Assembly: GCA_964247055.1 (NCBI GenBank)
Contig: OZ176053.1
Location: 6,634,001 to 6,698,000, forward strand
DNA: 64,000 nucleotides
Direction of reading: 5' to 3'
Origin: Paragordius varius
Taxonomy: Eukaryota > Animalia > Nematomorpha
In this document: positions 12,001 through 40,217 of the stretch, piece after piece
How the letters are laid out: every line of letters starts with the position of its first letter
Numbering within the stretch: the stretch's first letter is position 1
Notes under the pieces: generated by a model
Told to the model about the DNA's origin: nothing
The model's database searches: none
The model's input: only the letters and a program-made list of their open reading frames with translations
Program-made: the position numbers and the translations under genes

Positions 12001-15000
12001 TTAGCACACCCTCGATTTTGAAGTATTTATTGTCCAATTTTTAAATTAAATATACATCTTTTTACAATAAATAGTTGGTAAAAATGATTTTACGCTCTCT
12101 TAGCGTTCAGTTACCTTTTCATTTGCAGGTGATTAGATCTTGGGGTAGCTTTGTATTTTAGTGCTTATACTTGTAAATAAACAACGGTTTTGTAAGGTGT
12201 TTTGGTAAAATTCAATTATCACACAATGTTTTACTGCATTAGATGAAAAAGCATGTATCTTTTACAGTTCTTTTCTAGAATCCTAAATCAAACAAACAGC
12301 TGATTTTAATTAATAAATATAAATTATGATGTAATATAATAAACTTTCTATTTATTATATTTTTTTAAACAAAATAAATATTTTTTGCCTTGTTGTATTA
12401 GCGATAAAAATCTAATAGTTGAATGGGGCAAAAAAATTTGAGATGAGGAATACAATACTTTTAATTTTTTTAATGTGCCTAAAAGGTTAAACTATATTTT
12501 TTTCTGATTTGGCCCAATATCTTAAATACTTTTCAATATATTGGAATTTAAAATCGTTCTGGGATACAAAACTACTCTCATATTGCGAAAAAAAAGTTCT
12601 TTATCGTACTAATCTATATTGAGCCTTTTTTAAAAAAACTTTTTTTATATAAAAGGCAAAATTCCAATCAAGTCATTATATTATTCAGCGTTTGTTTTGG
12701 TAAAGTGTCAAATTTATTTTACTGATTCTATATTACAAAATAACTATAACCATTTGTTTACAGTCAAAACAACTCGTCGAGTCAAAAATTTAGCCCAATT
12801 ATGGCAACTCCGAATCTATTAAGCTTTCCACCCGCCATGTTCCCACCACCTCCGATGCCCCCGTTTCCACCAATGCCACCTATGCTTTATCCACCACACC
12901 CGCCTTTTTTACCATCAAATAACAATTTTAGTTGTGGGACAAATCCTATGTCTCCCACGTATCCTAAGAACACGGCGATCAGCAATAAAATAGCTAGTGC
13001 CAATAATAATGATGGTTATATGCCAAATATGGCGAGAACAACCCGACAAGATTATGAAAATGGTGGTGTGACACATAACAGTTTCAAAGGACAAAATATG
13101 CAGAACCGTGGGACCCCGGCAAAAAAATTAACACGAACTAAATCTTTCTCATCTGCCAATACAGAAGTAATATTTCATCAAAAATAAATTTCTCGCTTAT
13201 TAATATTTGAATTCATAAAATTAGCGTTGTGAATTGGTTAGGCTCTAATAATTTTCACAGATTTTTTAGCACATGGAAAATAAATATCAACTTTAAAAAT
13301 GAGTCTTCTGAAGGGGTGTTAAAGCAGAAATTCTAATAAAAGATATATTCGGTTAAACTATGCATTTGTAATTTAAACATTTTAATGTTGCAAATGAAAC
13401 CGCTTCAGAGAACAACTTCTCCGGTTATAACACAGTTTAAGTAGAATAACAACTTACCTTTATTAGAACTATTATAGGACCTGCTCTAACCCTGATTTCA
13501 AACATAAGCATCTCTGATGGTAAATCTTGGCTACACTAAGATATCTTGGTATTTGTTGAAATTCAAACAATTTTTAGTAAACCTCATTTTTTTAACATGT
13601 AATTTTATCATTCAAATATATATTTATAAATAACGCTTTTGGCTTTATTATATTAGAATACCCGTAAAGATAATTTTGATAATAACAGCGGCAAATCCAA
13701 GTACTTTTTGCAAATAGGAGACACAACTCTAACTTTGCAAGGTAAACATGAGGAAATTGTTGAAGTAAAATTTTAAATTTTATTTATTAGCTGGCCCAAA
13801 ATGTCATCGAAAAGTATTTTGAAACAAAACTCACTAAGAATGTTGGGAAGGATACCTCCTCTGTATTTCTTAGTTGTGAACAGAGTGGTAAAAAGGTATA
13901 TTCTATCATTATAATAATTTAAAGATTTATTCAATAAAATAATATTTAATATATTTATTTAAGTGGACATTAGATTCAAATAATGAAAAGGTGATTTTGA
14001 GTCCAAAAAACCTAAAAACCCAGAAGTATGATGAATCAGAAATAAAACGCAATGCATTGAATGTAAGGACCATTCTTAACATTTTTTACACTTATCTTTC
14101 CTAAATTTATTTTCATGATTAATTTTTCGGATTATTTTCTTCAATAAAAATTCGTTTTTTCAAATTTGCAAGGTAATTATTGAGAGCTTTAAGCATCATA
14201 ACAGTTTTATTTTTTGAAGAACTAGAATAAAATATTCAATATTTAAGTAGCTGGGTACAAATATCAAGCAAATTTTTTCTCAAATTTTTCATTTCTAAAA
14301 CTTTAAATATATCCTTAAAAAAATATACTTGTCAATTGTAGTCAATAATCGAAACATTTTATAGGACATTTGAGTTCATAAGTTTGTAATCTAATTGAAT
14401 GATATATAATAAGTAGGACAAATAATAGCAAATTTGGGTGTAAGACAAGATTATGTTTATATTTAAACTTATTCAAAGTAGGCCCTTATCTTAAAACGCA
14501 AACGTTAAGGGACAAACATATTTTTATAAGGTAATTATTAATTTAGAGAACTCAATCATTTCATCATAGTATGGGTGCAAATAATAAAGATTCATATTAT
14601 TACAAGAAAGGGCCCAACAAATATCACGAAGCAGAATACTTACAGTTAACTATGGAAAATAGTTTGGAGGAAACGCACAAAGAACATAATGGACATATTT
14701 TGTCCCCAATGGAAAAATATCAGCAAGGATTCTCAAAGGGTATAATTAAATTAGAGTTTTTGAAAATAATTTTTGATATCGTTTCTATCGATTTGATCTT
14801 TATTTGGCAATATTAAAAACGATTTCTATTTATCTAACTTTCTCGTTTTCAATTATCTCAATTATCCGTATTTATTGGTGAAAAAATTTATTTGATGGTA
14901 AGGAAGCACTCAAAATTCAATAACAGACCAGTTTATGAATTCAAAACGTCAGTCGTTAGTGAATCCAAATGCGTAATTTTTGCGAAAAAAAATCATACCA

Positions 15001-17022
15001 CTTGCATTTCAAGAGTTTCCTTGAACACTTCAAGTTGATCCTTGGACATTTCAAGTTAATCACTTAACACTCAAGTTGGTCCTCTAACTTTTTGTTTTTA
15101 ACCATAAATTTGCATTTATTTGTTAACCTAATTTTCTTTATTTATTATACTCATTTAAATTAATATTTTTCATTTAAAAACCGATTTTTTGTTTCGAAGT
15201 AATTTTTTCCAATTCAACAATATTTTATAAATGTAACCGTAAAATTGTATTTACTAACCCAGAAAACTTACAATTTTATTTAGAACTTAATAAATATATA
15301 CGGTTTCTGAATAATTAAAACTTGATATTTGGTTAAAGGTAGAGATGGGTGTAAAATAATAAATATATGAATAATACACGGTTTGATTGACAAAAGTAAC
15401 AAAAAAATTAGAAAAGTTGAAAGACCAACTTAAGGTGTTCAAGGACATTTTTGAAGTGCAAATGGTATATATCTATGCGCATAAATGCAGTGGATTCATA
15501 AAAATCTTTTTGTATTAATATATTTTATTAGTTCAATCAAACATATTTGTGATACGCCTTTAGGGAATCTCATTTCACTCATTTAAAAATATTAATATCA
15601 AGAGGAAAACAAAGACTTGAAAAGTTGATAAATATTAGTTTACTTACTTGGGCAAAACACATTTATAAAAAGAGGCTTTTTCACATATATGATCACATTT
15701 ATATTGTTTATGTATCGTTATAAACAACCATATATATATGCGTGCATCACGGATATAATCTAGGAAACTATCCTATCGTTTCTTGTAAAAAATTTAAACT
15801 AAAAAATTATATATTGGTACTAGATCCGTATGTTAAACCAATACCCAAGGATGTTACTCGAATAGCATACACGAAAGATTTTATGATAAAATGTGCTTTC
15901 TCACCGTTTGCACGGGCATCACCTAAAAACTTACCACAACTTTTGAGGGAAGCCTCATTCATGATAAAACCCATACCACAAGTATTTGTTAAATGCAAAA
16001 TCTAAAATAGGAATATCAATTTTTTTGTTAAACTACTGGTTTGTTTAGTCAATTGTTAATAGAACATATAACTAATTTATCAATCTTTAAACAATTTAAA
16101 TTGATATATATTATTATTTGGAAATTTTAGAAAAGCCGTTTTAAGTTTTAAACTTAATGATATTAGAGAAAGTGTTTTTATTAAAATATTTTTCCCATTA
16201 ATCGTTATTACGTTTTTTTCTAACAATGGACATGTTAAAATTTCACAAATAAATAAATATATAGCTTGAACTTTCTCAAATTTACAAATGTATATAATAT
16301 ATTGTTGTTATGAGATGACACCATGAATAAATAAAACCCATTTGATTATATATTTTATATTAGGAGCCATCATTTTATCTTAAACCCCAATTAGACAAAT
16401 ATAATTCGGGAACTATTGCTAACAAATCCAAATTGTTACATGGAAAAAATGGACAATCAAGCATCCATGGCGTTTGTGCGGTTCCAGAACCTACACCTGG
16501 ACTTTTACTGAATGGCACAGTTTTTTCTGATTGGGTTAATAATCAAAATCGTCCAAATATCATTGTAACAGGTATTTTCTATCTATCATTTGCTGACATC
16601 TTTTAGGTTTGTTCAAAAAATATTTGATTGTGTGCATGTCAGTATATATGTTATCGAAAATTGCATCATCATCTTGACTTCAGTCTTTAGTGTTAGTGCT
16701 TTTATGAGTCCTTTTTACAATTTAATTCATTTCATTAACCTTTAATAAAAAAGGAACAAGAGACTACATCATATTTTTAAAAATTTTTTTTATAAATGTA
16801 CAAGGGCAACATGCGATACAAACTCCCAAATCTCCCCATCATCCGGTCATTTATCCTCCTCCTATTTTACCACCAACGACACCTAGTCCATCGTGTGTAA
16901 TGTTAAATGGCAATCAGGTTATAAATATACCACCGCCATTTCGTGCTATTCCAAACAGTGTTAATATTGATCATACCAATGGCAATAATATGAATCATGG
17001 CGGTAAAAGAACTTTAAAATAA
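6073..17022 (+). CDS. mxt: Mextli-like eIF4E-binding protein (MIF4G-like segment, KH domain, C-terminal 4E-binding region), about 1173 aa; exons 6073-6211, 6460-6720, 7535-7710, 7770-7862, 9031-9122, 9303-9400, 9487-9558, 9946-10003, 10653-10707, 10899-11730, 11869-12022, 12764-13166, 13657-13764, 13791-13895, 13964-14062, 14547-14739, 15824-15981, 16364-16571, 16805-17022
   Basis: Phase-consistent GT-AG chain, 3522 nt in total. YLDRAK...DLRLKLLEILELK resembles the Mextli MIF4G end. KH domain: GRVMGVKGKRIHQIEELSNTVVSFQK...EREVTLSGPSSDAIKLAKILIKETIKRNSSP. RIAYTKDFMIKCAFSPFARASPKNLPQLLREA resembles the Mextli 4E-binding region. Family call is from recalled similarity; the last exon boundary is less certain. 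Confidence 0.82.
6748..7243. mobile_element. Two abutting degenerate hAT-type MITEs in mxt intron 2 (6748-6947 and 6956-7243)
   Basis: cagtggttcccaacc...gggaatcactg, then caaaggtgggcaac...ggcctcgcgggccgca...gttgcatatctctg. The TIRs are imperfect and no clean 8-bp TSD is visible. Confidence 0.5.
8408..8868. repeat. 231-bp-period tandem duplication in mxt intron 4
   Basis: Copies at 8408-8637 and 8639-8868 differ at about 4 positions by eye; each begins aactctattatataacaaagtg. Confidence 0.92.
9585..9818. mobile_element. hAT-like MITE in mxt intron 7
   Basis: TIR cagggattgtaac / gttgtaatccctg; flanks atagtttg and aaattttg (6/8 match); GGTTC/GAACC subterminal repeats. Confidence 0.6.
13765..13790 (+). 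other. 26-nt spliceosomal intron in mxt
   Basis: gtaaaattttaaattttatttattag. Retention hits TAA; removal joins GKHEEIVE|LAQNVIEKYF. Confidence 0.8.
14961..15497. mobile_element. Foldback MITE (about 100-bp imperfect inverted arms) in mxt intron 16
   Basis: Left arm gaatcc...atacca.ttgca.ttcaa...tccttgaacac.t.aagttg is mirrored by the reverse complement at about 15400-15497. Confidence 0.65.
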
Positions 17023-17763
17023 ATTTATTTTTTACTTCACCATGGTTTATCATAAAAAAAATTAAAATTTGTATATATGCATGAATTTGAAGTGGCGAAA
17101 TATATATATATATATATATATTATACATGAATTTTTTTTATTTTTTATTAGCCATGTTAAGTTATATTTTTTATTAATTGTACACACATATATATTGGAA
17201 ATCAAAGATCTTCCATCATTATTAATAACCAGTATTATATTATTAATGAAAACACACATAATTTATTTTTATTGTTTGCATAACACTTTAAATGAAAAAT
17301 AAAACGGTGAAAAGTCAAATTTTTGTATGCAATTTTGCCAAGAAAGTTCTATTACCATCCTTATATCGCCTCTTGTATATAATTTCATTTTTGGAATTTA
17401 AACAAATTAAAAAACCAAAAAAATATTTTATTATTTTATTCTCATTATATATTATATAAAAGACAAAGGAAATTGGTTTTTTTACAATGTATTATAGTAT
17501 GTGACCTGATGCATTTATTCCATTTTATGTTACATTATATTCTATACAATATGTAATTATAAACACATTTTCTAAGTTTATAATAAATAATTATTTTGCA
17601 TGGTATATATTGTACATATTTAATTTAAAATTTATATATATATATATATATACCACAAAATAATTTTTTCTTTCTTTTTTTTTCATTACAAGAAAACAAT
17701 AAAAAAGGACAGAGATGAAAAAAATAAATTTCTTTTTAAACGGGGAAAAAATGTACACAACCT

Positions 17764-19997
17764 TTACAAATTATTATTGATTTTGAAGGGGCACCTAGAC
17801 ATAACAACGGTTTCTTTATCATTAAAAGCGTATTCAGCCTTGTTATGCATAAATAATTTGCCGTCTGCAAAATAAAAACTGTCGGATTTCGTTTCGTACG
17901 GGTGATTGATCATATCCTGCTCTATAAAAATAAAATAATAGTACCCATTTATTTTAAAAAATAAGAAATGTTTAGATAACTATATACATACCATTTATAA
18001 TTCAAATTCACCATTAAACAATTCAAATTTACCATCGAACAATTCAAATTCACCGTTGAACAATTCAAATTCACTATAAATAATATAATCTTATGGCATA
18101 GTTTATTATTTTTTCAGTATTATATTAATTTTAAAAGTAATTTCTTTTTTAAATATAAAAAAATATAGGTAATTTTTAATCTTAAAAAAACATAATTTAT
18201 TTTAAAAGGCATTTGAATTGGGTGAATTTGAACAGTAAATGATATATATATTAAATTTAATATTATTTATTCCAGTATCCTGGTTAATAAATAAATGTCC
18301 ATATATAGATAACATATATATAGGAAAGGTGAATATTTCTGTTTAATATTGATGACAGAAATCAAGTGTATAGTTTTTGTGGAGCAAATTTTAAATGAAG
18401 ACACTATAAAAAATTTTACATAAGAAATAAGTTAATACAAATTTTATTTTTGCTTATTTCACAATATACCAACTTAAATAAACTTATTATATAAATGCGC
18501 ACTGTAAATTCAATGAAATCGAGATTTGGGTTAGAAAGTATAAATTAAAATGTATTATCTATAATAAATATTATATCAAATATAAAATGGGTCTCTCGTA
18601 TAGAATTCGGCATTCAATATAATAGAAATCTAAGACATAACAATATGGTTTAAAATAAACGCTTAAATAACCTATTAGGTGATATAATTAATAACCTATG
18701 CAATTTATAGCCAGGACATTAAAAGATACTTAAAAATAAACATACAGAAATTTCATTTGATTAATACACGTAAATTTTCTTAAAGTAAATTCATTTTCAG
18801 CTTTAACAGAATATATAAAGGCTAAACTTAGCAATCTTCTAGTTTTAAAGATCTTTGCAAAACTAGTCAAATAGATTAAAAATACCCAGGGTATCTTATA
18901 AAATCTAGTTGCGGTTCTTTTAAATATTATTTTTAGCCCAAACTATAGCTATAATACCAAATAGGAGCAATGTTTACTCATTGCCTGTGTAAAGAGAAAA
19001 TTTGCGTTGCTTATGTCTTAAGCTACTGAGAAAGCGGTGAAATGGAATAGATAGGGTATAAAAAAAATTCAACTTTATTTGAATATTATAAAAAGGATAA
19101 AAGAAAGGGAGCAAAATAAAGAAATATCAAGCAAAATTGAAAATGTGCACTATCGTAAACCAAAATGAGCTTTATGGATAATTTTGTCGATTTTTCACGT
19201 TTATCTCTATTGTTTAAAAATTCCAATGATAGTGTGTAGCAGCTCATTATGAAAAATTTAAAAGTTGCAAAGATTAAACAAATAATTTAAACGTAAACGT
19301 TGCTAATTTAGAAAAGGTGTGCTTAGTTTTAACCTCTCGCTTTATTATAGGTTATAAAAAAATTTACTTTGCATATTGGAAAGATATGGCATTGCATAAA
19401 TGTGTTCACATGTATTGATAGAATTCGGTATACAGTAGCCAAAAGTGAGATCAAATGATTTCAGCAGTTTTCGTTGGAAGTAGTGACGTTCAATCATTCG
19501 AAAGTCATTGATATTTTGATTAACAACAAATTCAACGCTATAATAATGAGAGAGGGCTTTACAAAGCAATTATTTATAAAAATTAATGATAACGATGGTA
19601 CGAACATGGTTACAACACACAGCAGTCATATAATGTATTACGTAGTGCCAATAACATTTATATCAAGGAATTCGGGTTTAAATTTATATCGCACTGTCCT
19701 TGATTCTAAATATTAAAATATTAATACCAAACAAATTGTGCTGTGGATTTACTTCGCATATTATCTTGTTTTTATCCAAATCTCGGATTTGAAACTTCAA
19801 AAAATCAACACCAAAAACATTTGCTTCGGGTTGACATAGAAAATCTTAACAATAAATAATTATAAACCGACAGTTGGCTGTTTTAAAGTTAAAACATTAT
19901 CTATTGATATAAAAGGTTGTTGCAAAAGTTTTGTCTCCAAATCCAGAAAAGATTTTTTATTGCACTTTAATCCTGCTACAGATTGATTATTTAACAT
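17764..19997 (-). CDS. UNC119: UNC119 (GMP-PDE delta domain lipid-binding chaperone), 212 aa; exons 19997-19868, 19844-19728, 19705-19642, 19537-19368, 17921-17764
   Basis: Spliced product: MLNNQ...[15 protein letters not shown]|[24 protein letters not shown]...|[21 protein letters not shown]|[48 protein letters not shown]...|[33 protein letters not shown]...NL*. 639 nt, all GT-AG. Confidence 0.95.
17981..18250. repeat. Small MITE-like element with 21-bp tandem units and an inverted copy, in the last UNC119 intron
   Basis: aattcaaattcaccattaaac-type unit x3.6 at 17999-18074; inverted atttgaattgggtgaatttgaa at 18211-18232; TA-rich flanks. Confidence 0.6.
19706..19727 (-). other. 22-nt spliceosomal intron in UNC119
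   Basis: Minus strand gtattaatattttaatatttag. Retention reaches TAA; removal joins HNLF|ESRTVRYKF (phase 1). Confidence 0.88.
19845..19867 (-). other. 23-nt spliceosomal intron in UNC119
   Basis: Minus strand gtttataattatttattgttaag. Retention gives GGT TTA TAA; removal joins KQPTV|DFLC (phase 1). Confidence 0.88.
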
Positions 19998-20198
19998 ATT
20001 GATTTAACTCAAAATAATAAAAATATGTCTAAAAAAATTAAAGGAATCTTATATCGAAATTGTAACGAAAGGTTTTACTATAAAACAAGTTTGATAAGTA
20101 TGACAATAAAAAAATAATTCCGGCTCTCTAATTCAATTGATGCATAGAATTTTTTATAATCCCATCATAACCTTTTGGGGTAGTTTTATATCCTAGAG

Positions 20199-20344
20199 CA
20201 GGGCTTCTTGACCCCATTTATGATTGCGAGTTTATTAAAACCCCAACAAATATAAAAGAAAAATTGGGCATATTTTTGCATAGGATTTCCAAATTTTTCG
20301 CGGGCCGCACAAAAATTTTGGAGGACCGCGTTTGGCCACTGCTG
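20199..20344. mobile_element. Short Charlie/hAT-type MITE
   Basis: Right end gcgggccgca...gaggaccgcgtttggccactgctg; left end cagggcttcttgacc; flanks tcctagag and gactaaag (5/8 match). Confidence 0.5.
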
Positions 20345-20714
20345 GACTAAAGGATAAATATTATATAAATTAGGGTAAAATTTATTTTTAAGATCCAAAT
20401 GAAGTGTCAAATGACCTTTGAGATAAAAAATGGTATATTTTTATAAATTGTATTATTTCATCCGTAACTATAGATTTTATAAGTTAGCCGCAAATATTCG
20501 TGCGAACCATCAATAAAATATCTCCCAAAAAATAGACCTTTTAAATAGTAAGTTATTAATGATTGAGGAATAGATTGGAAAAATTGTCATTCAATAATTG
20601 TGTTTTTATAAAAAAAAATGATATCCTAATATTATGCTGATAATGGTTAAAAGTTATTTTTATATCCTGTTTTGATATTTATCATCCATATTGATACCGT
20701 TTCTATTAAGTAAG

Positions 20715-20826
20715 AAAACGTTTTTATTGATTGGGAAAATGTTTCGATTGACTGGAAAAACGTTTCGTTTGATTGGAAAAATGTTTCGATTGACTGGAAA
20801 AAAGTTTTTTTTGACTGGGAAACGGT
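20715..20826. repeat. 21-bp minisatellite (about 5 units)
   Basis: ttga(t/c)tgg(g/a)aaaa(t/c)gtttcg(a/t) units start at 20727, 20748, 20769, 20790, 20811. Confidence 0.9.
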
Positions 20827-21003
20827 ATATATAAATTTAGAAATCGCTGTGAAACATATAAAAATAAATTGAAATTCGCACACAATGTTATAGCATTGTT
20901 TTTATTATAGTTTCAAAAAAAGTGAGTTCTGACCGTCTTAATTCTCTCGAATATATCCAAGCAGTCGCGTGGTAAATATTAAATTAAAGTTTACGTTAAA
21001 AAA

Positions 21004-23130: not shown

Positions 23131-23699
23131 AAAGTTTTACAATGTAGTTTTTTCGAAATAACACCTATAATTTTGTTGATAATATTTATCAGGATTATTT
23201 CGGTTTTAAGAGATTGAAAAAAATAAATCTACATTTTTACGAATTCTATAACATCTTCTGATTCATAGTAAATTTATACAAGATATTATACTGTCGGAAT
23301 AGAAATTCCGGTATGAGTCTTTCCGAAAGATTTGATGATCTATTATTCTACGGATTGTTATTTTTATAATAATAATTTTACAAGTTAAAAAATATTTATT
23401 GTAAAATTATATTTTTAAGAAGCCATGTGCTAGAGGATTTGAAATCGAAATAAAAAGTATATAAGGTATTAGGCGGATTATCAAAATATGCTTTCTTTAG
23501 CCTTAGGTATGCAAAAAAAACTTAAACATGTAAAATTGTAAAAAATTCTTAAACTAATTTTCCTGTTTTTTTCTTTTAATATTTAATACAATTTACAAAT
23601 AACTATATTATACTGGAAAATGTATATTTAACTTTATGATCAATTCCGTAAAATACGAATTGAATAGCAATATAATGTGACATAAGCAAAAAGACTTGA

Positions 23700-24170: not shown

Positions 24171-24204
24171 ATAATAACTGATACATTTTCTTATCGTATA
24201 TTTA

Positions 24205-25880: not shown

Positions 25881-26071
25881 TTATCAGAATCCCCGATTAA
25901 CACTGTGTAATATATATAGTTATTTTCTTGGAAATTTTTTAAATCTTTTTGTATATGTTTTTTGGTTATTGTTGGTTTTTGTCATATGAATTACATCTCA
26001 TGGTTTACCAATTCTTAATCTTAAAAATCAATACAGCATTATTTATATTTTTTGTTTAAATAAACCATCAT

Positions 26072-29000
26072 ATGCCGAGCGAAAACGGTACATCCGAGGA
26101 ATGCGTTGAGTTAAATCGTAGAGAAACATACAATGGATATAAAGAAGATATTGACGAACAACTAACAGATGTTTTATGTGATGTTCCTTCCAAAGGTGTA
26201 TCTTTCCTGAAACCGTGGTTGCCTATAACGTCGCCAGGATATATTCAAGTAGTCTTTTATGGATTTTAATTTGGCTTTAATTATTGTTAAAATTATATAT
26301 TTGTTACCCATAATTTCAAAGCAGATTATTGATAAATTTTAATTTACATTTTATTTAGGAATATAAAATTGAAACACCTTATGGATGCTCCTTGAATGTA
26401 GCTGTTCAGGGAGATCGAAATAAGCCGGCAATATTGACCTACCACGATATCGGATTAAACCGTAATTTTTTGCATATGAATTTATATTTTTTAAATAAAA
26501 ATTCAATTAATCACGTAATTTTATATTTGTTTAGCATGTATGAAAAAGATGTTGTTTTTTCTTTGCCATAAGTAATTTGTAAAATTTCAATATAAAACCA
26601 CCAATGTATGAATAAAATAGCAATATAATTAAAAAATGAAAAGAACATATATTTTATAGTCTATCTAAATATTATTTTATAAGGGTTGACATTAATTAAA
26701 TAACTTCATTTATCTTGTAACATTAATAAATAAATTTAAAGTTATATGTTTGTTTTAAGACTTTGATTTGAAAATTCAACAAAACATTTATTAAGATTTT
26801 ACGCATGATAATTTGTTTAAGGCTTTTACATTATTAAAAAATTTCACCTTTTTTATGTAATTTTAATACTGCTCCTATTCATCATCAACTCTAAGTTAAA
26901 TTTACCAGCTTTTTAAATTATCTATTTTCTAAGCTTTATATTAATGCTCTATTTTTAGACGTAAGTCAATTCCAACACTTTTTTTCGTACCAAGATATGA
27001 GTATAATGTGCAAACATTTTTGTGTTTACCATATCGATGCACCCGGACAAGAGGAAAATGCGGGACTTATCTCATATCAGTAAGTAATTTGTTTAAGAAA
27101 TTTCTTTGTGTCAGTCACTTTTTTTTATTATTTTTCTTTCAAGTTTGCTTTCTTTATCAAAGAGAATGTTTATGAAAATTTTTGATTTCAATATATATAT
27201 TTTGTATATTTGGATGAATGGATAATTATTACTATCACACATTAATCTGTCTGCATTTGTCACAAGATTTTGGCATATATTATATGCACTCTCAACGAAA
27301 TTCACAAAAAAGAAATATATTTTTTTCGGAAATTTAATTATAAACAAAATTAATTCTCTGTTTTTTTCATCTAAACTTTATTACAGAATGTGGTTTATTT
27401 AATGATAAAACTAAGTGACTTATTAAATGACGATAAAAGAAGTTGCCGCTTTACTCTAATTTAATGAATATATTATGTTTATACAAAAAGTTTTACGTGA
27501 AAAGTTTAGTTTAATGATAAACATTGTCTAAAATATTTAAATGCTTGCAATTGCAAAGCGGAATAAAAAAATTAGAATATTTCACAAATAAAAAAACCGA
27601 AAAATAAAGTTACATTTTTTTGTTTCATTAACATGAAAATTTTATGTTTTGGATCGAAATTGGATGTAAATTAGAAATCAAATTACTTTTTATGATATTT
27701 AGATCCTGTAGTATTGGTAATAATGTACATTTATTTAACCATCACAGTACATATCGAATGGAAGATATCTATTAAAAAAATTTTTAACCAAATTATTTTA
27801 CGACTGTAATGCCCGAAAATGCACATTTTTTTAGTTAACTAAAACTCTTTAATTGTCCTATTTTCAAGCTATCACTTTGAGGTATTTGCATAAAAAACAA
27901 TTTATTTTAAATAATCCTTAAAATATATACTTTCTATATGGGTGATCGATGAATTCTATCACTATATAGTTTTAACGGTTTAAATAGAAAGCCATGCATT
28001 CTTTGGTATTACAAATGTAAAATTATTTCAGTAAATGAATTTTATATATAATATTACAGTCATGTATCCTTTATTTTATCAGAAATTTATTTTCTTTCGT
28101 TAAATGGGTATAAATATTTGTTAAAGAATGGAAAAAACAAGAGGTATTAACAATATCATATTCATCAAAAAAGTATAAGAATACTACCATAAAGCTCTTG
28201 TTTTTTCCATTTTTTACCAAATATTTATACCAACCCATTTAACGAAAAAAAATAAATTTTTGATAAAATAACTGTATATGTATATATATAAAGTCCAAAA
28301 TGTTGCATCCTTCCAACATCTCCTTCACCACAAACAAATGATGATTCTTTACCCACAAACAACAATGGTAACGGAGGAGAAATGCAATCGATGAATGAAG
28401 TCTTATCAGATAATACTTTCATTAACGATAGGGACGAGCAAATGATAGCAAAAGATTCGGGTCAAAAATCAACGGATCAAATTAAATTGATTGAAAGTGG
28501 ACAGCCTAGCCCTGGTCAAAGTTGTAAAACTGCTCAGGGTACAACATAGATATAATTTTTTTTACATTTTTGGCCAAAAAAAGCATAAAAGTTTTACACC
28601 GGAATCGGAACCAAAGTTGGTATACCGGTTTCAGCTGGTATTTTTGTCTCTCGTTTGCGGTTTAATTCAATGTTTTAAACAGCGATTTTGGAGAGATAGA
28701 TTGTTATTTACGTTACTATTTACCTATAATTAGAGAAAAGTAATTAAAAACACAAAGGTATAAATGTTTAATTTTTTGTTATTATTGAAAAAATTCAAAT
28801 GTACCTGTAATAAATATAGAATATAAATTAATTATTTTTAAAGAGATAAAACTTTAGGTTTTTTGGTTTTGTAACAATGGAATCTTTTTTTGTTTTTTTA
28901 ATTTAAAAAGGTTCGTTTTCGATCCCTAGTTTGAGTTTGTTACCTACATCACACCAGTCAGGCTAATATTTCCATAAAAATTTGGCATTGGTAAACATTA

Positions 29001-32000
29001 ATAAGCACAAAGTCGCATATATTATTTAATTTTTTGATTAAAATGCGGAAATTAATTATAACAAAAATATTTAAAATTTTGTAAACACCCTCAATATTAT
29101 GTTTTATAATTAATATTTAGATGGCGGAAGAACTGGCCAAGGAGTAAAAAAATCAATTTCCAATTTCGGTGCTAAAAACAGAGGTTTACTTTTATATTAC
29201 ATTTTCAAATAAAATATTGGATTGCAAAATTATTTATCTTTGAATGACATTTATGTATAAAATTTAAAAACAATTTATAAAATGAATAAACTATAGATAG
29301 TACACATTTAAAGTTAATACTTTACAACACACCAATTATAAAAAATCTTTTTTAATATATTAACTTGTATTCGCCATATTTTTTTGGTCTTGTGATAAAT
29401 ATCATTGAAAAAATAATAATTTGATAGTTTTATAAAGATTTCGTCATGTGTTTTTTTTCCTAATTTTATGGATTAATTAACAAATTTTTTGTAAACCGTT
29501 GTTATGTTTAAAATATTTAAAATTTAAACAATCTTTTGACTTAATTATATATTATTCATTTTTTTATCTCAATGCAAATTTTGCTATGATTTTAAATTTA
29601 TTACGTTTTTAGTTTATCGCAAGAGTTTTTTTAAAATCAAATAAAATCCATGTGGTGTATTATAATATATTAAGGCACAGAAATATTAATATAGAATTTG
29701 CCATAAAACATTTTTTTATTTTTAAGGCAATAATAATTATTCTATGGTCACAATAAATATCAAGTTTAATTGTATTTTCTTTATTGAATCGTTATTTGAG
29801 TTTCAAATTACTTTATGTAAACAAAATATAAACATTCCTAATCAAAAAATTTAATATTGCATCACAAAGTGGATGTAAAATATTTTATATGGTAAGGAGC
29901 GTGTTTTGTAGACATGGCAAAATAGCTTGCTTACAGCCGACTAAAAAATATTATTTAAATTTATACTGTGATAATTAAAACATTTGTTTTAAACTAATTT
30001 TGAAATTATTTGTATAGCAAAAATATATGAATAGCATAAAATTTTGATCAAAGTGTATTTAAAACAAAGTGGGAAATATTAATTTATATTAATGATTTAC
30101 AGTATGCATTTTAATGGTTGCTTATTTTACACTATAGTTGGGAAATTTGCACCACAAGAGTGTATGGAAAAAAGAAAGGAAATGTTGTTTTTTCCATACA
30201 CTACTGTGTTACAAATAGCCCTACTATAGTGTGAAATATGCAACATTAAAATGCATACTGAATATAATAAATTATTTATCGCATAACGAAAATGGGTTTA
30301 TTTATATGTTCTGTCACATATATGGAAACTTGAGTGTTATCAAATTTATATTTAATTAATAATAACGCGCCTTAACAAATTCTAGATTATGAAAACGGTA
30401 ATTCCATTGCATCAAGATCGGCATCTCTAAGCACATCATCTGTTGGTTCCTTATTCAGTTCTCTGTGGAATTCATTTGGTACCAATCAAAACACCAACAA
30501 TACTATAAACTCAAAGTAATTTTTTACTATTTTTTGGTTTTTAATGTATTTATGGGAAACATGACTTATAGTCAGCTTTGATAACTAGCTATACAATTAA
30601 TGAAATTTTTAATTTTTTATCAAATGAGTTTGACTTTACTAACATAACTAAAACCGATTTCCTTTAATTCATATATTTTATATTAATTGACTGACTGATT
30701 ATGATTACAATTGACCTTTTATATTTATAAAAGGTCATATTGCTTATTAAGTCTAGATATTATATATAACTACACTTTATAATGATACTTTAGTTCAACT
30801 GTATGTGCTTACCCAACCATGGATGAATTGGCCGATATGATTACGTGTGTCATCAAACGTTTCAAGTAAAATATATATTAAAACATATTTACAAAGTGCT
30901 AATTTATATTATTTGCATGTTAGATATTGCAGTTAATATTCCTGCTAAAAACCAATGATAATTCTCTTTGCTTAACATATTATTTAGTTAAATTAGAGTA
31001 TTTTTATACATAAATATTGGTCTCATTTGTTGTCATTGCTTTTGCATCATGATAGGCAATGTGGAGCTTTAGGCATACATTTATTTAAATTAATCGGCTT
31101 AAATTTAATATAAGCTTAGGTTTCAAAGTTTGTTGGACAATTTTAAATAAAAATGATTTCAGCACAACTTTTTAATTCATAAAATGTTGGGTATGGTTTT
31201 TAAAAATTATTTTAAGCTAATTACTTGGGCAAATTGAGTATGATGGCCATTATTCACATATCTTTTATAGGTAGAAAAATCACCTACTATTGAATAAAAT
31301 TTATAAATATATATATACTAGCGTGAATCTCGTGCTGCTACGCAGCCCGAGGAAGTCCTTCGGACTTTGGGGGGGAGGGGGAGTTCGAAGTTTGGATTTG
31401 AATGGGTCTACCGGTTTTCCTGTACCAGATCACAAAGCCAGCATTTTCCATTTTTATAAATATATAGATTACCATAAATAATGTATTAATATCCATATAT
31501 CTTTTAAAATGGCATTTTACGGGGGTAGCGGGTAAAAAGAGGACCTAAATCAAAAAAGTGACTCGACTATGTTCAGCGCGATCAAAAATAAGTAAACAAA
31601 ATTCATATTTGAAATTGAATGGTCCAACTCGTTCTCAAAAAAATTGACTTAACCCATTTTTCACACGGGGTGGGCCCGAACTGGGGACCTAATTCCAAAA
31701 AAGGGCGAAGCTATTGTCGGGGCATTCATTAATGATTATATTTTTTTGATATTTGGATTTGATTGGGTTCACCGGTTTTCCGGAAACAGATCACAAAGTT
31801 ATATGAAAAATCAGTTTTTAGCGGGTAGCTCCTTACCCAGCAGCTATCATTAAATAAACGGTGGACTAAAATTTTTGCCTTTTAACAGGGAATACGTGGA
31901 ATCTTTATTGAATTTTTACGGTCTCATACCTAGGGCGAAAAATCGATTTGGAAAATTATTTTTGTGAACTTCGTTTTTTGAAAAAAATGGCATTTTACGG

Positions 32001-34127
32001 GGGGAGCGGGTAAAAAGTGGGCCTAAATCAAAAAAGTGACTCGACTATGTTCGGCGCAATCGAAAATAAGTAAACAAAAATCATATTTGAAATTGAATGG
32101 TCCAACACGTTCTCCGGAAAATTGTCTCAAAAACACGATTTTGTGGACTTCTGTTTTTTTTAAAAAAAACGTTTTTCATACGGGGTGGGCCCGAACTGGG
32201 GGCCTATTTCAAAAAAAGCGCGAAGCTATTGTCGGGACATTTATTAATGATTATATTTTTTCGACATTTGGATTCTATTGGGTCTACCGGTTTTCCTGTA
32301 CCAGATCACAAAGCCAGCATTTTCCATTTTTATAAATATATAGATTTTCACATTATATACAGAAATTCAATTTTTTCAAAACACCCACATATAATTAGTT
32401 ATATTTTCACAACTTTAAATGCTAGGCTAATTGTTCTTTACCTTATGGTGTGAAGATTTTTTTTCTTTATCATCTGCAAAATTAATTTAAACTAAAAATA
32501 TCCAAATCTTGTTAATACTTCTGTAAATTAGTGAAATTTATACCCATGATTCCATTGTATAATTTTAACATTTTTTAATTTTTTGGAAACCGCTCCTCTA
32601 TAGGCTTACATTAATTATTCATTCCAAATTTAACCTTTGATTGTGTTTTTACCAATTTTATGTTGAACTTCCAATTATAAATCCATCTTTGTCTAAATGT
32701 ATTAAATTTATGACAAACAACAAATTAAATCCAGATTTTATTAGTATTGAAGCAAATTAATTAATCTTCAAAGACGGTGTTTATTTCTATAATATAAATG
32801 TCCTAATTATTTCTTTATACTTAGATAGGTGGAATATTTTTACTTAAAGGCTTATATATGAATGCCGTTTTTTATTTTGATACGAATTCTAAAATAATTT
32901 TTTTATACAATTACAGTATTGCTAGCTTTGTTGGATTTGGAGTTGGTGCCGGAGCCAATATTCTTTCACGATATGCGGTATGGAATTTCTTTAGTTTGTC
33001 ATTTATTGTTATAAAAACAGAAAACTTTAATCTTAAATGAAATAATCCCTGTATAATTAATTTAATTTTGCTAGCTTTTAATACTTCCAACTCTTTTTTT
33101 CAATGGCTGATTGTAATAATGCTAGATAAAAATAATTGAAGTATAAAAAAATTGAAATAGAAATTATATTTAAATTTTTTTATTAGTCATTGACAAAATT
33201 ACTTTAATAAAGTAAAAAAATGGTGATTTTTAATATTCAGTTTGTTATTTTTAGAGTCATGTATCCTTTATTTTTTCAAAAATTTATTTTTTTTGTTTAA
33301 TGGATATAAATATTTGGTAAAGAATGGAAAAAACAAGAGCTCTCTGCTATTTCCTATACTTTTTGGATGAATATGATATTGTTACTCTTGTATTATACCC
33401 GAATAACAAAAGAAAATAAATTTTTGATAAAATAAAGGATTCATGACTATAATACACACCATTAAATTTCTTAAATATTTTTAGATAAATTCTACCATAT
33501 ATTTTCGTTTGACAATTAGTTAAAAAATCCGAATCGAGTTGAAGCCCTGTTTCTCCTTAATGCAAATTGTAATGCTGCTGGTTGGTCTGAATGGGGTTAC
33601 CAAAAGCTGAACACTTTTTACTTGCGAAAAAATTCTTTGACAAATTTCACTCATGAATACCTTTTGTGGCATCATTTTGGAAAGGTTTTATATACCCAGT
33701 AATTATATGGACAAAACGTAAATAAATATAAAGACAAACATACTTTTTTGAACATTAATTTTTGCCTTCTAAATTATTTAGTTAAAATTTTAAAATGCAT
33801 AATTGGTCGTGTTACCAATACATATCTCTATTTTAAACTTTGCAGTTTCAAACTATGATTTTTAATCATTATAAATTAAAATTTAAAAAGTATCATTGTT
33901 TTTTAGAAAAAAATATTTGTCGTTAAAGATTGACGTTTCGTATAATATCTTTTTTACTGTAATTTTGGTGCTAATGTTTGATAATAGGATAATTAATTTT
34001 TGTATACCATAATAATCTTTAGATGACACCAGAAAAAAATTCTGATCTTATCAATGCGTTTCGGGAATATTTTATGTCGCATATTAACAATCAAAATTTG
34101 GCCGGTTTCATCGATAGTTATGTAAAG

Positions 34128-34164
<37 letters not shown>

Positions 34165-36464
34165 TTTTAATAATATCAAAATACATTAAAATGAATACAA
34201 AATCTAATTATTATGTTAATGTCTGGCATTAATTTATCAATTGGTTTTTATTTTTTTTATCATCCAATCAATCCATCTTTTGTTTTTATAATAAATGATT
34301 GCATAATTTTTATTGTTTAGACGTTCAGATTTAAGTCTCACAAGAACAATTGGACCTGATTATTTGGTATCCAAGGATGGGAACAGAAAAACTCCTCTAA
34401 AAAATTTTGAGTATTTTTTTCATTTATATTAAACTTTGTAAATTTGTACGAAATTGTGCCGTTAGAACTAAGTCATCTAAAAATGTCTTAGTATCGTTTT
34501 TTATTTTTTATAGTATAAAATTTAACTTATTTTTGCATTTATAGTTGTCAAGTTATGATTATTGTGGGCAATGAATCTCCGCATTTGGAAGATTGTGAAA
34601 ATATGTTTTCCACTTTGGAGCCAAATAATTCAGCATGGCTTAAAGTATACATATTTACACTTTTTCATTATTAATCCTATGTAATTATGTGAGTTTTTTA
34701 CGATAGGTTTTTTACTAAATTGACTTTTTTAGTATAAAATTGTCACATTGGTTAACAAAAGAAAACTGAGAAAATTTTAATATAATATGAAGTCATAATT
34801 TGAACATATATTTAAAATTTACTCTATATGCTGGTTTAAATTACTTTTTGAGTTTTTTCATAAATAATTTTGTATATGGTTTATATAATTACAATTTTAA
34901 TATCCATTATTTCGTAAATTTTTCTTATTAATACCTTTTAATATTTATTGATTTTAGGTTTCGAATTGTGGTGGTATGGTTTTGGAGGAGAAGCCAGATA
35001 AAGTTGCTGAAGCATTTAGATTATTTCTGCAAGGGCTAGGATACAGTATGTTCATATATTTTAAATGATTAAAAATTTGTTATAAGTCAAACAAAATATA
35101 AATTTAGGAAAAATATATTTGTTTGATACCGACTGCCTTAATTTATTAGGCCACTAAAATTTGCAAACTCAGAAAGATCACTTATACATTTTGACCTATA
35201 GGTTTTATTTTATAATTGGCCCCTTATATCTTATAATTAGATATGATTTTTTTAAATAACTCATTATTCTTCCAATTATCAAGTTCCTCATTTGAATCAA
35301 GAAGCTATTAATCACACAAAACGGAATGAATTTGCAAAGTATCGCTCCTTGTCAACTAATACACATAACCTAACGCCCAATATTAGTTGTGCAAATCCGT
35401 TGGCTTATCGTAATTCGGTTCATGCTAACACGATTCATTTAACCGGCGGAAACGCTGGTAAAGTTTCAGCAAAGGCTATGACCCTTCCACCTATAGAAAC
35501 TCTCGGCTCACAAAGTAAATTTTTTTTATAATAATAATAATAAAGAATGAAAATGGACTAATAGGACTTGGTATAATATAATCAAATATTAATTGATTAG
35601 ATCAGGGGTGTCCAGCCGCGGTCCTCCCATATGTGCGACCCGGAAAAAAATCCGAAATCCATATTTTCTAACATATGTTCACAAAATCGTATTATAGTCG
35701 ATCTAATCGGCAAAGAACTAAAAAATTGTTATATTGCGTTGGCATTTTACAGTCTTATGTTTGAAATATAAATATATTTAAAATGCGGCCCGCTCGGTTT
35801 TGAGTCATAAATGCAGCCCGCAAAGCCATTTGTCTTCGACACTCTTGAACTAGTTGATTGTTAGCACTCAACAGTATGACACAAATATTTGACAGGTAAT
35901 TTTTTACATATAAATATATCCAACTTTGTATTCCCATTAATTTTCAATTTAATTTGATAACATCTTTTCAGGTCATTTTACGGTTTGAGTTATTAGAAAA
36001 GGGGTGGACAAAACATAAACAATCAGTGTTTTTAATAAAATATCAATTTGCTATAATTATCATTATTTACCATATAAATCACAGATATCCACCCATCATC
36101 TGTAAATGCAAACGATGCACAGCGATCAACAAACTTAGCTGGCGTTAGCAATAAGAAAAGTCAAATTCTTAAAGTAATTGACGTACCCGACCTGGTTTTA
36201 GAAGCAATTAATACGGCAAATCATCATCATGCGCAGATTAGGAAATCTCCTATGTCAGGGGATCAGAATATTACAGTTGCATCTTCAAATAATTCTCCCA
36301 TCACGACCTCATCCCCTAACAATTTACCACCTCCAAATGAAATGTTAAATAAAGACACTAAAAATATTTCCACTGATGAAAATCAAATAACAGATGATTT
36401 AGATATTACAGCTCTCCCGAACACTGATCAAGTTAGGTTGCTTTCACCCAATGCAATAGCCTAA
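26072..36464 (+). CDS. NDRG: NDRG-family (Ndr, inactive alpha/beta-hydrolase) protein, about 709 aa; exons 26072-26248, 26359-26461, 26959-27079, 28294-28538, 29121-29183, 30386-30515, 30794-30865, 32917-32977, 33520-33684, 34023-34126, 34321-34410, 34545-34644, 34958-35045, 35284-35514, 36085-36464
   Basis: EYKIETPYG...KPAILTYHDIGLNH, HFCVYHIDAPGQEE, YPTMDELADMI, VGFGVGAGANILSRYA, EYLLWHHFGK, NLAGFIDSY, CQVMIIVGNESPH, SNCGGMVLEEKPDKVAEAFRLFLQGLGY. Phase-consistent chain of 2130 nt. Exons 4-6 and the last two exons rest on phase and open frame only. Confidence 0.9.
28057..28271. mobile_element. Hairpin MITE (TA-flanked, Tc1/mariner-like), copy 1, in NDRG intron 3
   Basis: ta|cagtcatgtatcctttattttatcagaaatttattttctttcgttaaatggg with an inverted partner at 28235-28271; homologous to 33254-33449. 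Confidence 0.7.
31318..32344 (-). mobile_element. Composite non-autonomous Helitron in NDRG intron 7 (one 3' end, two 5' ends)
   Basis: CTAG at 31318-21 with hairpin ctcgtgctgc-tac-gcagcccgag at 31329-31351. An identical 5'-end block ends ...aaatatatagat at 31468 and at 32344. Internal 478-bp-period duplication (31509/31987). Confidence 0.8.
33254..33449. mobile_element. Hairpin MITE copy 2, in NDRG intron 8
   Basis: ta|gagtcatgtatcctttatttttt...aaaataaaggattcatgacta|ta, about 45-bp inverted arms. Confidence 0.75.
35603..35847. mobile_element. Charlie/hAT-type MITE in NDRG intron 14
   Basis: caggggtgtccagccgcggtcc...gcggcccg...ttcgacactcttg; flanks gattagat and aactagtt (5/8 match, TAG core). 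Confidence 0.65.
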
Positions 36465-36656
36465 ATTATTTTTGTGCATGTGTCCTTTTTATTAAATACA
36501 TCGGATATAAAGGCAATATTATTTGGTTAGTATTATTTTGGGAAACCGACACTCCATTGTTATATATATATATATATATGATTCTTTCCTATTTTGCAAC
36601 ATTTTCTATGGCTTTTATTTGACTTCAATATTCCAATTTTTGTTGCTTATACTTTT

Positions 36657-36699
<43 letters not shown>

Positions 36700-38908
36700 T
36701 TTTTAATGCTTTCAATTTGTTTTTCAATGCAGCAAAAGTTTTTTATTTACCTTTTGTGCAAAGCAGCAATCGAATCTCAGAAATGTATAGTGATGATAAT
36801 TACTATTTTATCATCGCTCTCATACTAATGAAAACAAGGTTAATATAAAACATATATCCAACAATATAATCCACCACATTGTCTTCATATATTAAATATT
36901 AATACTCCTCCTCCGCAAAAAATATTTTAAATTAAAAATTTGTAATATAATTACATCATATATATTGGATTTAACAGTGTTTATTAGTCTTTAATATAAT
37001 TATTAAAACATAACAATATTCGTGTAATGTATGTGTGCAAAGCAATTTACACAATTAAACCTGTATTTTAATTTATTATATAAATTTTTTAAGCTTTGGT
37101 TGTATATGTATTATAAACGACAGTCGCTTTTTAACGGAATAAACGGCTACAATTATCGATATCTGGGTATAGGATTAACCCGTGTAATGATTTTTATAAC
37201 CGCCATATTTGTTAGTCATATTTTTACAAACTAAAATATTTATATTATCATATAGAATATTCCTCTTTTTTTATGATTTTTTGTTCGAAATTTTTGTTTT
37301 GCAAATAATCTTGTCAAGCTTGGACTTCCTGTTAAAATCGCTCTCGGTAGTTTTAAATTAGTTCTCAATACTTTTGTTTTAAAATTGTGATTATCTCAAA
37401 AACATCCTAGTTAATATATATTACCTGAATCCCGAACTTTTTTCGATCCTTGTTTACATTTCATTTTTTATATTCAGTTCCGAGTATCGTTTGCGTTAAA
37501 ATCGTTATAAAGTTCCAGTTATAATTTTAAATATTTGCCAACAATAAAATATTATAGCCAAATACCACTTATCACGAAAAACACAAAAAATTATATATAG
37601 AGGTTATTGTAACGAAAATTTATAAGAAAATATAATTAAAACATAGTTTGTGAAAGCGACACCAAAAAAACTTAAAAGGCCGAAAAAGTATTTTTTTTGT
37701 CTCATAGAGGTTTGAATGTTTAAGTAATATTAGTTAAAATTATGAAAGTAATACCGATAAAATTTACATACTATTTGACATTGATATTTAACTCGAAATA
37801 ATTATATCATAATAAATAATATAGTGCTAAAATCACTCTTAGGACAGCAAACGATTCGTGGGCCGCGGTTTTAAATTATTCGTTGTTCATAGGTCGAGTT
37901 ATTACAAAATAATCTAATTATTAGTAGGCTTTCTGATATATTATATTGATGATCGCGCGCTGATAAAAAAAGTCAACCACATTAAAAGGACCCCATTGAA
38001 AGTTTTTTTCGGTTTAATATGTTTATCATACATGACTGTTTTTGAAAAAAATCAAATATTTGGTAAACAATGAATTAATTTGGTATATGTTGTTGGAATA
38101 TTGGTGACAAACAAAAGTTGAATTACGAAAAACTTTTATAAAATTACTAGCGTCATTATTTTTAAAATTGTATGTCAGGTGCAAATATTCATTCCTCAAT
38201 TAGGTTAATGATTCCCAAAAATACAAAAGTTATATTTGAAAAAAAATTACACCCATAAAAACAGTTTGACCCATTCTTTAGCATTATAAGCTGATATTTC
38301 TCCTTCCTGGATGTTATATTATCCTTAAACTTTAGTTTAATATTTATAGGTGATTAAAACTGAACTGTGTTAAAGGAATTGGAATAGCTATCTTTCGAAA
38401 GTAGGAAACTTAATTGTTTTCATAATCAATATGGTATAAACCTAATTTTCAATATTATTCTATGGCTAAAAATAAAATTTGGTATATTGTTGATTTTTCG
38501 CAAATAAGTAAAAACCGAATTTTGGGTTGTTTACTCAGAACCGTTATAAATATTTTGTTTCTGTAAATTCGAAAAAATAGAAATTTATTTGATAGATAAC
38601 CCATAAGATCGAAACCCAATCGAAACATAAACCATTTGATTAAGAAGCCTTTTTATAAAAATATTTGGAACCGTATCCAGAGAAAAAAATAATGGAACAG
38701 GAAAAATTAAAATAGTTTTATCACTATCATTATCTATCCTGGTATACATGCGCGCAGTAAGATGAATTTGTAAGAAAACGCAAAAAATATTTAAAATCTA
38801 TTTTTATATCTTATAATTTAGTTAATGAAAAACAACAAAGCATTATTATGCAAAGAAGGCCGTAGGATAAAATAAACACACATCTGGTTATTTGACTAAT
38901 TCAAAAAA

Positions 38909-40217
38909 ATGGACGGTGATACTATAACCTATTATTATTGGCCGCAATGTTACTTCTGCCAACGAGTATATGTTTAATAATTTAAAGGTAACTATCGCTT
39001 TAAACGAAAAAAATATACCACATAATGAGAAAGTTATTAGATTGTTAAAATTTGAAAATTTTGAACCAGAATTCATCAAAAAGAATCCTCTTTGTTTGGT
39101 CCCGGTGATTGAGGATCATGGTAATTTGATAAACGAATCTGATCGTATTATTGACTATCTTGAAAATAAGTTTCCCGAAAGTAAATTTAATAAAAATATG
39201 TACAGCTGTACATTTATACCCGGATAAATCTCAGACAGTTGAAAGAGAATCGATTGAAAAATTCAAGGAATTAATATCTAATGCACCTTTATCAGCGATA
39301 CATTTTGGTTGTCAATTGGATCCAGAATTTAGGAAGCATGTTAAGATGGATACCGAAATGATAAATGAATATATTAGTAAAAATTTATGCATATCTCTAA
39401 TTAGCTGTTTTTTTGTCAAATATTTTATAATTTCAACCTAAAAAATTATGCTGCTTATTACAAATTATTTTTTAACTTAGATATTGTGAGGAATAAAGTA
39501 AGTCACTTGAAGGATATGAAAAAATTGTATCCACAATTTGCTGAGATATATGACAAGAAAATCAAAATATCACAAAACATGAATATTGATAAGTACGCTT
39601 TTGAAATAGATGAGAGTATTGAAAATATGAAAAAAACGCTATTGGTCATCGAAAAACAATTGGCGAAAATGGACTCTGGTATGTTAGCTAATTTTTTTTA
39701 TAATCGAACACATTTTATAATACAGAACTAATATAGACAGTAAAGATAATACATCATTTTTTATATGAAGAACCATATTTTTAGACCCTTTTTAAATATT
39801 TTATTATATTAGGGTATTAAATATATAAAATAGATGGTAAAACAGACATCTCCATCACTATTTTTTATTTCAATCATACTTTTATAGGTCATTTAGAAAA
39901 AAATGGTATCTTTATAAACAATGTTTGTAATTTACCATTTATTCCATAAAGTTTTTTGTTAATGCATAATAGAGGGTAAAAAATGGCTGTGCACATCCAA
40001 TTTCTCGGTCGCTGATGTCTATCTCATACCCTTGTTGCATCGTTTGGATATTATGGGCATTGCAAATGAGTTGTGGGGACCTATGGATAAAAATCCACAG
40101 ATGCCTCACATTGCAAAATATTTCAAGGAAGTTATGAAGCGACCAGCAGTTATCAAAATGATACCGCAATATAAGTATGCCATATTACATAAATTAACTG
40201 TTGCTTTTATAAACTAA
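38909..40217 (+). CDS. GDAP1: GDAP1-like glutathione S-transferase family protein; exons 38909-38965, 38988-39180, 39206-39376, 39481-39678, 39973-40217 (3' end uncertain)
   Basis: MDGDTITYYYWPQCYFCQR|VTIALNEK...PEFIKKNPLCLVPVIEDHGNLINESDRIIDYLENKFPE|TVHLYPD...ISNAPLSAIHFGCQLDPE (GDAP1-type long alpha4-5 loop)...|EGKKWLCTSNFSVADVYLIPLLHRLDIMG...YFKEVMKRP. Confidence 0.88.
38966..38987 (+). other. 22-nt spliceosomal intron in GDAP1-like gene
   Basis: gtatatgtttaataatttaaag. Retention gives GTA TAT GTT TAA; removal joins CQR|VTIA (phase 0). Confidence 0.88.
39181..39205 (+). other. 25-nt spliceosomal intron in GDAP1-like gene
   Basis: gtaaatttaataaaaatatgtacag. Retention ends at TAA 39225-27; removal joins KFPE|TVHLYPD (phase 1). 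Confidence 0.88.

Follow-up and report, generated by a model that had tools for sequence, protein, structure and literature searches.

We analysed a 64-kilobase (kb) window of the horsehair worm Paragordius varius (assembly GCA_964247055.1, contig OZ176053.1, positions 6,634,001 to 6,698,000) and found that three of its genes, an UNC119 gene, a GDAP1-like gene and an 'mxt'-like gene, contain five segments of only 22-26 nucleotides (nt), hereafter called tiny. We read these segments, with a probability of about 85%, as U2-type GT-AG spliceosomal introns of the ordinary kind, reduced almost to the minimum size at which an intron can work. Judged from the genomic sequence, it is very probable that the four segments in UNC119 and the GDAP1-like gene are true spliceosomal introns, 22-25 nt long, that occupy ancestral positions, and the fifth, of 26 nt in the 'mxt'-like gene, is a probable one. 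The initial annotation of this stretch had proposed a spliceosome that handles 22-nt introns together with long, transposon-bearing ones. For four of the five segments this proposal is strongly supported by complete reading frames, conserved intron positions and phases, constant lengths in independent DNA, and variants that respect the spliced frame, but for the 26-nt segment the evidence is composition only.

The five segments lie where they had first been placed, with lengths of 26, 22, 23, 22 and 25 nt, and all of them, read on the coding strand, have GT at the donor end and AG at the acceptor end, as U2-type introns do. Their A+T content is 0.84-0.92, in keeping with the earlier description of nearly pure A/T, and their G+C content is 0.08-0.16 versus 0.28-0.40 in the exons; the window as a whole varies between 0.22 and 0.36 G+C per 2 kb. 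When a segment is retained, the first in-frame stop follows 1.7 to 14.7 codons past the donor (within the segment in three cases and shortly beyond it in two), which agrees with the few to about 15 codons given before. The longer introns previously seen in the same genes are also present, measuring 104 and 1446 nt in UNC119, 104 and 294 nt in the GDAP1-like gene and 68 nt in the 'mxt'-like gene. Four of the five tiny segments start with GTA, as do the long introns of these genes, and their interior is nearly pure A/T, with no polypyrimidine tract visible. One element of the original description falls away: the TAAT or TAAA motifs taken as candidate branch sites do occur, but chance alone would produce them in 79-86% of random A/T-rich segments with the same length and composition, and therefore no branch site can be claimed from them. 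When the whole window was searched blindly for open frames linked by a GT..AG segment of 20-30 nt, 272 matches came up, mostly within long open frames; such a search is too unspecific for counting tiny introns.

In the UNC119 gene, removal of introns of 23, 22, 104 and 1446 nt yields a complete frame of 212 amino acids on the minus strand. An exhaustive homologue search with exon 4 as query recovered 150 homologues, 12 of which, all full-length, were used to build a local profile. The features of the gene are given below with their matches to this profile and to Pfam, and with the corresponding introns of two other genomes, L003 (GCA_045791955.2) and L004 (GCA_000236345.1, which we take to be a liver fluke).

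19868 to 19997, minus strand: UNC119 exon 1, with the start codon (19997); local profile 258-281, weak.
19845 to 19867, minus strand: UNC119 intron 1, 23 nt, GT..AG, phase 1; same position and phase as introns of 1158 nt (L003) and 33 nt (L004).
19728 to 19844, minus strand: UNC119 exon 2; Pfam GMP_PDE_delta 1-29; local profile 284-316, E=1e-11.
19706 to 19727, minus strand: UNC119 intron 2, 22 nt, GT..AG, phase 1; same phase and same variable loop as introns of 598 nt (L003) and 32 nt (L004).
19642 to 19705, minus strand: UNC119 exon 3; local profile positions 336-356, E=1e-5.
19538 to 19641, minus strand: UNC119 intron 3, 104 nt, phase 2; same position and phase as introns of 419 nt (L003) and 34 nt (L004).
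19368 to 19537, minus strand: UNC119 exon 4; Pfam GMP_PDE_delta 66-121, E=1.2e-21.
17922 to 19367, minus strand: UNC119 intron 4, 1446 nt, phase 1; contains high-copy repeats, with very high repeat depth at 17900-18299.
17764 to 17921, minus strand: UNC119 exon 5, including the stop codon; Pfam GMP_PDE_delta 124-155, E=3.4e-9.

These exons are separate open stretches of the window that match consecutive profile positions (258-281, 284-316, 336-356, 357-411 and 415-449), the Pfam order agrees, and the spliced protein aligns colinearly with full-length homologues; the gap between profile positions 316 and 336 is a loop whose length varies among homologues. For the orthologue in L003 (P0028) the exact exon chain was rebuilt, and its introns of 1158, 598, 419 and 335 nt have phases 1, 1, 2 and 1, the same as those of introns 1-4 in the window. 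Introns 1, 3 and 4 interrupt the same codon in both genomes, namely ahead of [Y/F]LC, ahead of VEF, and six residues upstream of the conserved H in HPYET. L004 carries GT-AG introns of 33, 32 and 34 nt with phases 1, 1 and 2 that match window introns 1-3, and removing these three segments lifts the profile score from 154.5 to 227.5 bits and leaves a clean UNC119 sequence. In a third genome (L008), UNC119 is broken at the same profile positions by introns of roughly 0.6, 1.8 and 6.7 kb. Given the positions and phases shared with L003 and L004 and the profile positions shared with L008, the 23- and 22-nt segments are counterparts of introns that are ordinary elsewhere and that are microintrons in a flatworm. 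The window protein resembles the fluke-like protein no more closely than it resembles the UNC119 of other animals, and a search for close relatives with exon 4 found one distant genome only, the long-intron genome L008. Two further loci (L006 and L007), on compact, A/T-rich and apparently non-animal contigs, were set aside.

Two side observations belong to this gene. In the fluke-like genome, the publicly available UNC119 model (P0095, L004:501-1172) runs through the 33-, 32- and 34-nt microintrons, in frame or with compensating effect, and inserts spurious residues, a concrete case of annotation missing microintrons. In sequencing run X3, one low-depth DNA contig joins 19705 to 20045 and skips 339 nt, including exons 1 and 2 and both tiny introns; the joint falls at the exact first base of exon 3, and the skipped 339 nt have no GT..AG ends on the strand of the gene. 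This contig could be chimeric or could reflect a structural variant.

The GDAP1-like gene, on the plus strand, has a spliced frame of 287 amino acids and introns of 22, 25, 104 and 294 nt.

38909 to 38965, plus strand: GDAP1-like exon 1 of the gene model.
38966 to 38987, plus strand: GDAP1-like intron 1, 22 nt, GT..AG, phase 0.
38988 to 39180, plus strand: GDAP1-like exon 2, 193 nt; GST_N_3 positions 13-73, E=1e-12.
39181 to 39205, plus strand: GDAP1-like intron 2, 25 nt, GT..AG, phase 1; at the place and in the phase of human GDAP1 intron 2.
39206 to 39376, plus strand: GDAP1-like exon 3; best solved-structure match GDAP1 residues 109-146, weak (E=0.15).
39377 to 39480, plus strand: GDAP1-like intron 3, 104 nt; possible 79-nt deletion allele that would leave 25 nt.
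39481 to 39678, plus strand: GDAP1-like exon 4 of the gene model; three variants, all synonymous.
39679 to 39972, plus strand: GDAP1-like intron 4, 294 nt; many substitutions and small indels between samples.
39973 to 40217, plus strand: GDAP1-like exon 5, including the stop codon; GST_C, E=7.9e-8.

As with UNC119, the exons are colinear with homologues once the segments are removed, while the 'mxt'-like gene shows an open frame alone. Exon 2 begins at position 13 of GST_N_3, leaving room for exon 1, and its alignment to residues 42-101 of full-length GDAP1 in solved structures is gapless, which places the end of the exon after residue 103, in phase 1. A clinical splice variant, c.311-1G>A, is listed under 'int 2' and locates human GDAP1 intron 2 between c.310 and c.311 (PMC5532232); combined with the alignment, this puts the 25-nt intron at the same codon and in the same phase as human intron 2. 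A search for close relatives with exon 2 gave no candidate.

The 26-nt segment lies in the 'mxt'-like gene, also on the plus strand, between the following features.

13657 to 13764, plus strand: 'mxt'-like open stretch before the 26-nt segment; exon start not fixed, with possible acceptors ending at 13655, 13668 and 13688.
13765 to 13790, plus strand: candidate 26-nt intron, GT..AG, phase 0, G+C 0.08; stop after 3 codons if kept.
13791 to 13895, plus strand: 105-nt candidate exon with an open frame, G+C 0.37, without family match.
13896 to 13963, plus strand: 68-nt intron, G+C 0.09, phase 0.
13964 to 14062, plus strand: next candidate exon in the reading of this gene.

For the 26-nt segment, the initial claim that each segment is needed to restore the frame holds only in part. 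The candidate exon at 13791-13895 measures exactly 105 nt and stands between phase 0 introns. Since 105 is divisible by three, skipping it keeps the frame, and frame restoration alone therefore proves little. A reading in which 13765-13963 forms a single 199-nt intron, with 13791-13895 being no exon or an occasional cassette exon, has to be weighed for this reason; it also agrees with the missing family match of 13791-13895, for which an Atlas search returned noise only, and by our own estimate 35 codons would stay open by chance in roughly 4-5% of cases at this composition. We nevertheless consider it unlikely, because G+C steps through 0.37, 0.08, 0.37, 0.09 and 0.30 over the exon, the 26-nt segment, the 105-nt exon, the 68-nt intron and the following exon, and a value of 0.37 is attained by only 0.8% of 105-nt windows within confirmed introns. 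Additionally, the 26-nt segment resembles the four supported tiny introns in length, ends and composition. Read from the sequence, splicing from another possible donor, at 13742, would run into a stop. On this compositional basis, we hold it to be fairly probable that the 26-nt segment is an intron.

The name 'mxt' is unconfirmed, the available indications being a weak KH_1 match at 9474-9569 (E=0.0013), a weak DUF7513 match in the open stretch 13657-13764 (E=0.044; G+C 0.37) and a 4E-BP-type eIF4E-binding motif in the open stretch 15724-16002 on the plus strand (Pfam eIF_4EBP, E=4.4e-5). The best solved-structure match of the last stretch is 4E-BP1 residues 49-78, not Mextli, and the stretch may be part of the 'mxt'-like gene or a separate 4E-BP gene. 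Pfam found no MIF4G domain in the upstream stretches, and Atlas searches with the exons of 35-36 amino acids gave noise only. Directly after the KH-like exon at 9474-9558 lies another A/T-rich GT..AG segment, of 22 nt (9559-9580, plus strand). The stretch behind it is unlike the remainder of the KH domain, which seems to resume near 9940; this segment is likely a false tiny-intron candidate, whose donor probably belongs to a longer intron.

DNA from other samples bears on whether the segments could be frameshifting insertions in decaying pseudogenes or errors of the assembly. Very short A/T-rich insertions often arise as errors of the assembly or the polymerase, and such a view meets no contradiction at the RNA level. 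The initial annotation had named assembly indels among the findings that would refute its proposal. Runs X1 and X2 come from one sample and X5 and X12 from another (S3); all are DNA, with contigs that cover introns and intergenic sequence alike. Contigs of these four runs span both GDAP1-like tiny introns without any change in length, and a contig of a fifth DNA run (X6) spans 19598-19748, including UNC119 intron 2, with zero differences. DNA molecules that lack a tiny segment were found nowhere among the contigs of six DNA runs. Each GDAP1-like tiny intron carries one substitution (38974 T>C and 39203 C>T) that spares GT and AG, and the 104- and 294-nt introns of the same gene show several indels between samples.

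The variants in the exons respect the spliced frame. Nine of the listed variants in GDAP1-like exons 1-4 are synonymous and two non-synonymous, and 10 of these 11 fall at third codon positions of the spliced frame, for which we calculate a binomial chance of about 1e-4; in exon 3 all five variants are at third positions and four of the five are synonymous. Because each GDAP1-like exon lies in a different genomic frame, this pattern shows translation in the frames that removal of the tiny segments creates. Constant lengths in other DNA, coupled with variants that respect the frame, make both assembly error and pseudogene decay very unlikely, as do the GT..AG ends of all five segments, the coincidence of their positions with orthologue introns, and the full-length frames of UNC119 and the GDAP1-like gene. 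Least probable of all is removal by something other than a spliceosome, whether somatic DNA excision as in ciliates, an IRE1/tRNA-type nuclease or ribosome bypass: the size range does overlap the 26-nt XBP1 intron and short ciliate eliminated sequences, and the DNA runs come without a stated tissue source, but the ends are GT..AG and not TA..TA as in ciliate-type eliminated sequences, the near absence of G and C makes the G/C-containing stem-loops of an IRE1 site impossible, no DNA contig lacks the segments, and the sites are ordinary spliceosomal introns in relatives.

That these segments are spliceosomal introns removed from RNA, and how they would be recognized, we infer from the DNA. The tiny introns retain only a GTA-type 5' site and a terminal AG. 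Recognition across the intron (intron definition) would be the most likely mode, with a branch adenosine presumably a few bases before the AG, and the same spliceosome would also have to remove the long repeat-bearing introns.

Several points weigh against reading all five segments as spliceosomal introns. In the candidate RNA runs X7 and X9, which carry the same species label, only one 49-nt piece, at 86% identity, matches these genes, and another species is its probable source. Splice signals call for more than five cases to be defined. UNC119 intron 2 lies in the loop of variable length, where its position can be matched to no better than one or two residues. For GDAP1-like intron 1, a match with the human gene would hold if human exon 2 starts at c.118. 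Finally, the 26-nt segment has no homology support, and the exon that follows it can be skipped in frame.

Two further observations were made on the GDAP1-like gene. In sample S3 only, one contig in each of the two runs (X5 and X12) joins 39388 to 39468, skipping 79 nt within the 104-nt intron 3, at a depth about equal to that of the undeleted form in these runs. An intron joined in this way would measure 25 nt with GT..AG kept; a direct repeat, AAATT(T)AT, marks the breakpoints. The content between 39388 and 39468 is flagged 'not known' in the contig output, and a deletion allele is a candidate; if true, it would represent an ordinary intron turning tiny as a segregating allele. Exon 5 differs between samples by 7 non-synonymous and 2 synonymous variants, mostly conservative (2 and 9 in exons 1-4), and the protein ends at 287 amino acids without a C-terminal membrane anchor, which human GDAP1 has. 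The variant pattern of exon 5 and the early end suggest relaxed constraint or a further, missed exon.

The tiny introns take the first two, adjacent intron sites of UNC119 and likewise of the GDAP1-like gene, and the later introns measure 104-1446 nt; with two tiny and two longer introns in each, tiny introns do not form the majority expected of a compact genome. Two other genes were visible in part, one CTD-phosphatase-like (506-2275) and one NDRG-like (its 5' part, 26060-27080), and all introns seen in them measure about 100-480 nt. The window further contains an uninterrupted retrotransposon-like frame of 1351 codons (49149-53201, plus strand) and a transposase-like gene in three open stretches (41327-43151, minus strand). 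Given introns of 100-480 nt elsewhere and the presence of transposon genes, tiny introns make up a minority here, amid long introns and transposons. A published horsehair-worm genome, with a G+C content of 26.93% and 63.79% repeats, is compatible with the window, and introns are nowhere mentioned in the horsehair-worm genome papers that could be searched.

According to a paper of September 2026 (PMC13644364), myxobolid myxozoans and Dicyema are the only animals with known introns below 30 nt; it reports canonical GT-AG introns with medians of 22-27 nt in Dicyema japonicum, Henneguya, Thelohanellus and Myxobolus. The initial annotation had listed dicyemids among the known cases, but its list was incomplete in that myxobolid myxozoans and flatworm microintrons are the other relevant precedents. 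The introns described here have in common with those of dicyemids and myxobolids a length below 30 nt, GT-AG ends, conserved positions between conserved exons, signals cut down to about GTA and AG with no clear polypyrimidine tract, and an A/T-rich parasite genome. They differ in abundance, since in dicyemids and myxobolids tiny introns make up the bulk in compact genomes (tens of Mb to about 200 Mb), whereas here they are a minority beside introns of 104-1446 nt. That a spliceosome is able to process GT-AG introns of 15-30 nt is evident from ciliates (Paramecium, Stentor), nucleomorphs and microsporidia, as cited in PMC13644364; these are unicellular, non-animal lineages with nearly all introns tiny.

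Flatworm microintrons provide the other comparison. In Opisthorchis felineus, Clonorchis, Schistosoma, Echinococcus and Macrostomum they form a peak near 37 nt beside a peak of about 3 kb, cluster together and toward the 5' ends of genes, lose the polypyrimidine tract, and are missed by annotation that sets a high minimum (PMC6530080). Adjacent, 5'-clustered short introns beside kb-long ones are thus common to both systems, but the flatworm lengths lie near 37 nt (32-34 nt in L004) as opposed to 22-26 nt here, and fluke microintrons are far less A/T-rich (0.56-0.67 versus 0.84-0.92). The present case therefore joins a flatworm architecture to dicyemid and myxozoan lengths, and introns of 22-26 nt in such a setting are not yet reported in the literature searched.

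With introns of 22-26 nt standing beside introns of 104-1446 nt in the same genes, one spliceosome would serve both extremes. If true, extreme intron shrinkage would not need genome compaction, and the flatworm microintron design would extend to sizes under 30 nt, the supposed limit. In AUGUSTUS the shortest intron allowed by default is about 39 nt, and predictors with such a minimum would truncate or frameshift these genes; the gene losses reported for horsehair worms might partly be an annotation artefact. Tentatively, and at slightly less than even odds, we hypothesize that this is a third independent animal origin of spliceosomal introns below 30 nt and the first in a large, transposon-rich bilaterian genome, that the tiny introns form a discrete, 5'-clustered class instead of a genome-wide state, to which new members may be added by internal deletion, and that annotation pipelines may have inflated the reported loss of universal genes.

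The remaining observations concern the window and the samples at large. Rfam and tRNA scans of the window were empty. High-copy short repeats occupy 14900-15500 and 17900-18300, where contig depth reaches into the thousands in run X3. Although they carry one species label, the two DNA samples show non-coding differences of about 2-4%, with many indels (compared over 38400-40600), and the candidate RNA runs of that label diverge by about 14% in a conserved exon; several cryptic species may share the label.

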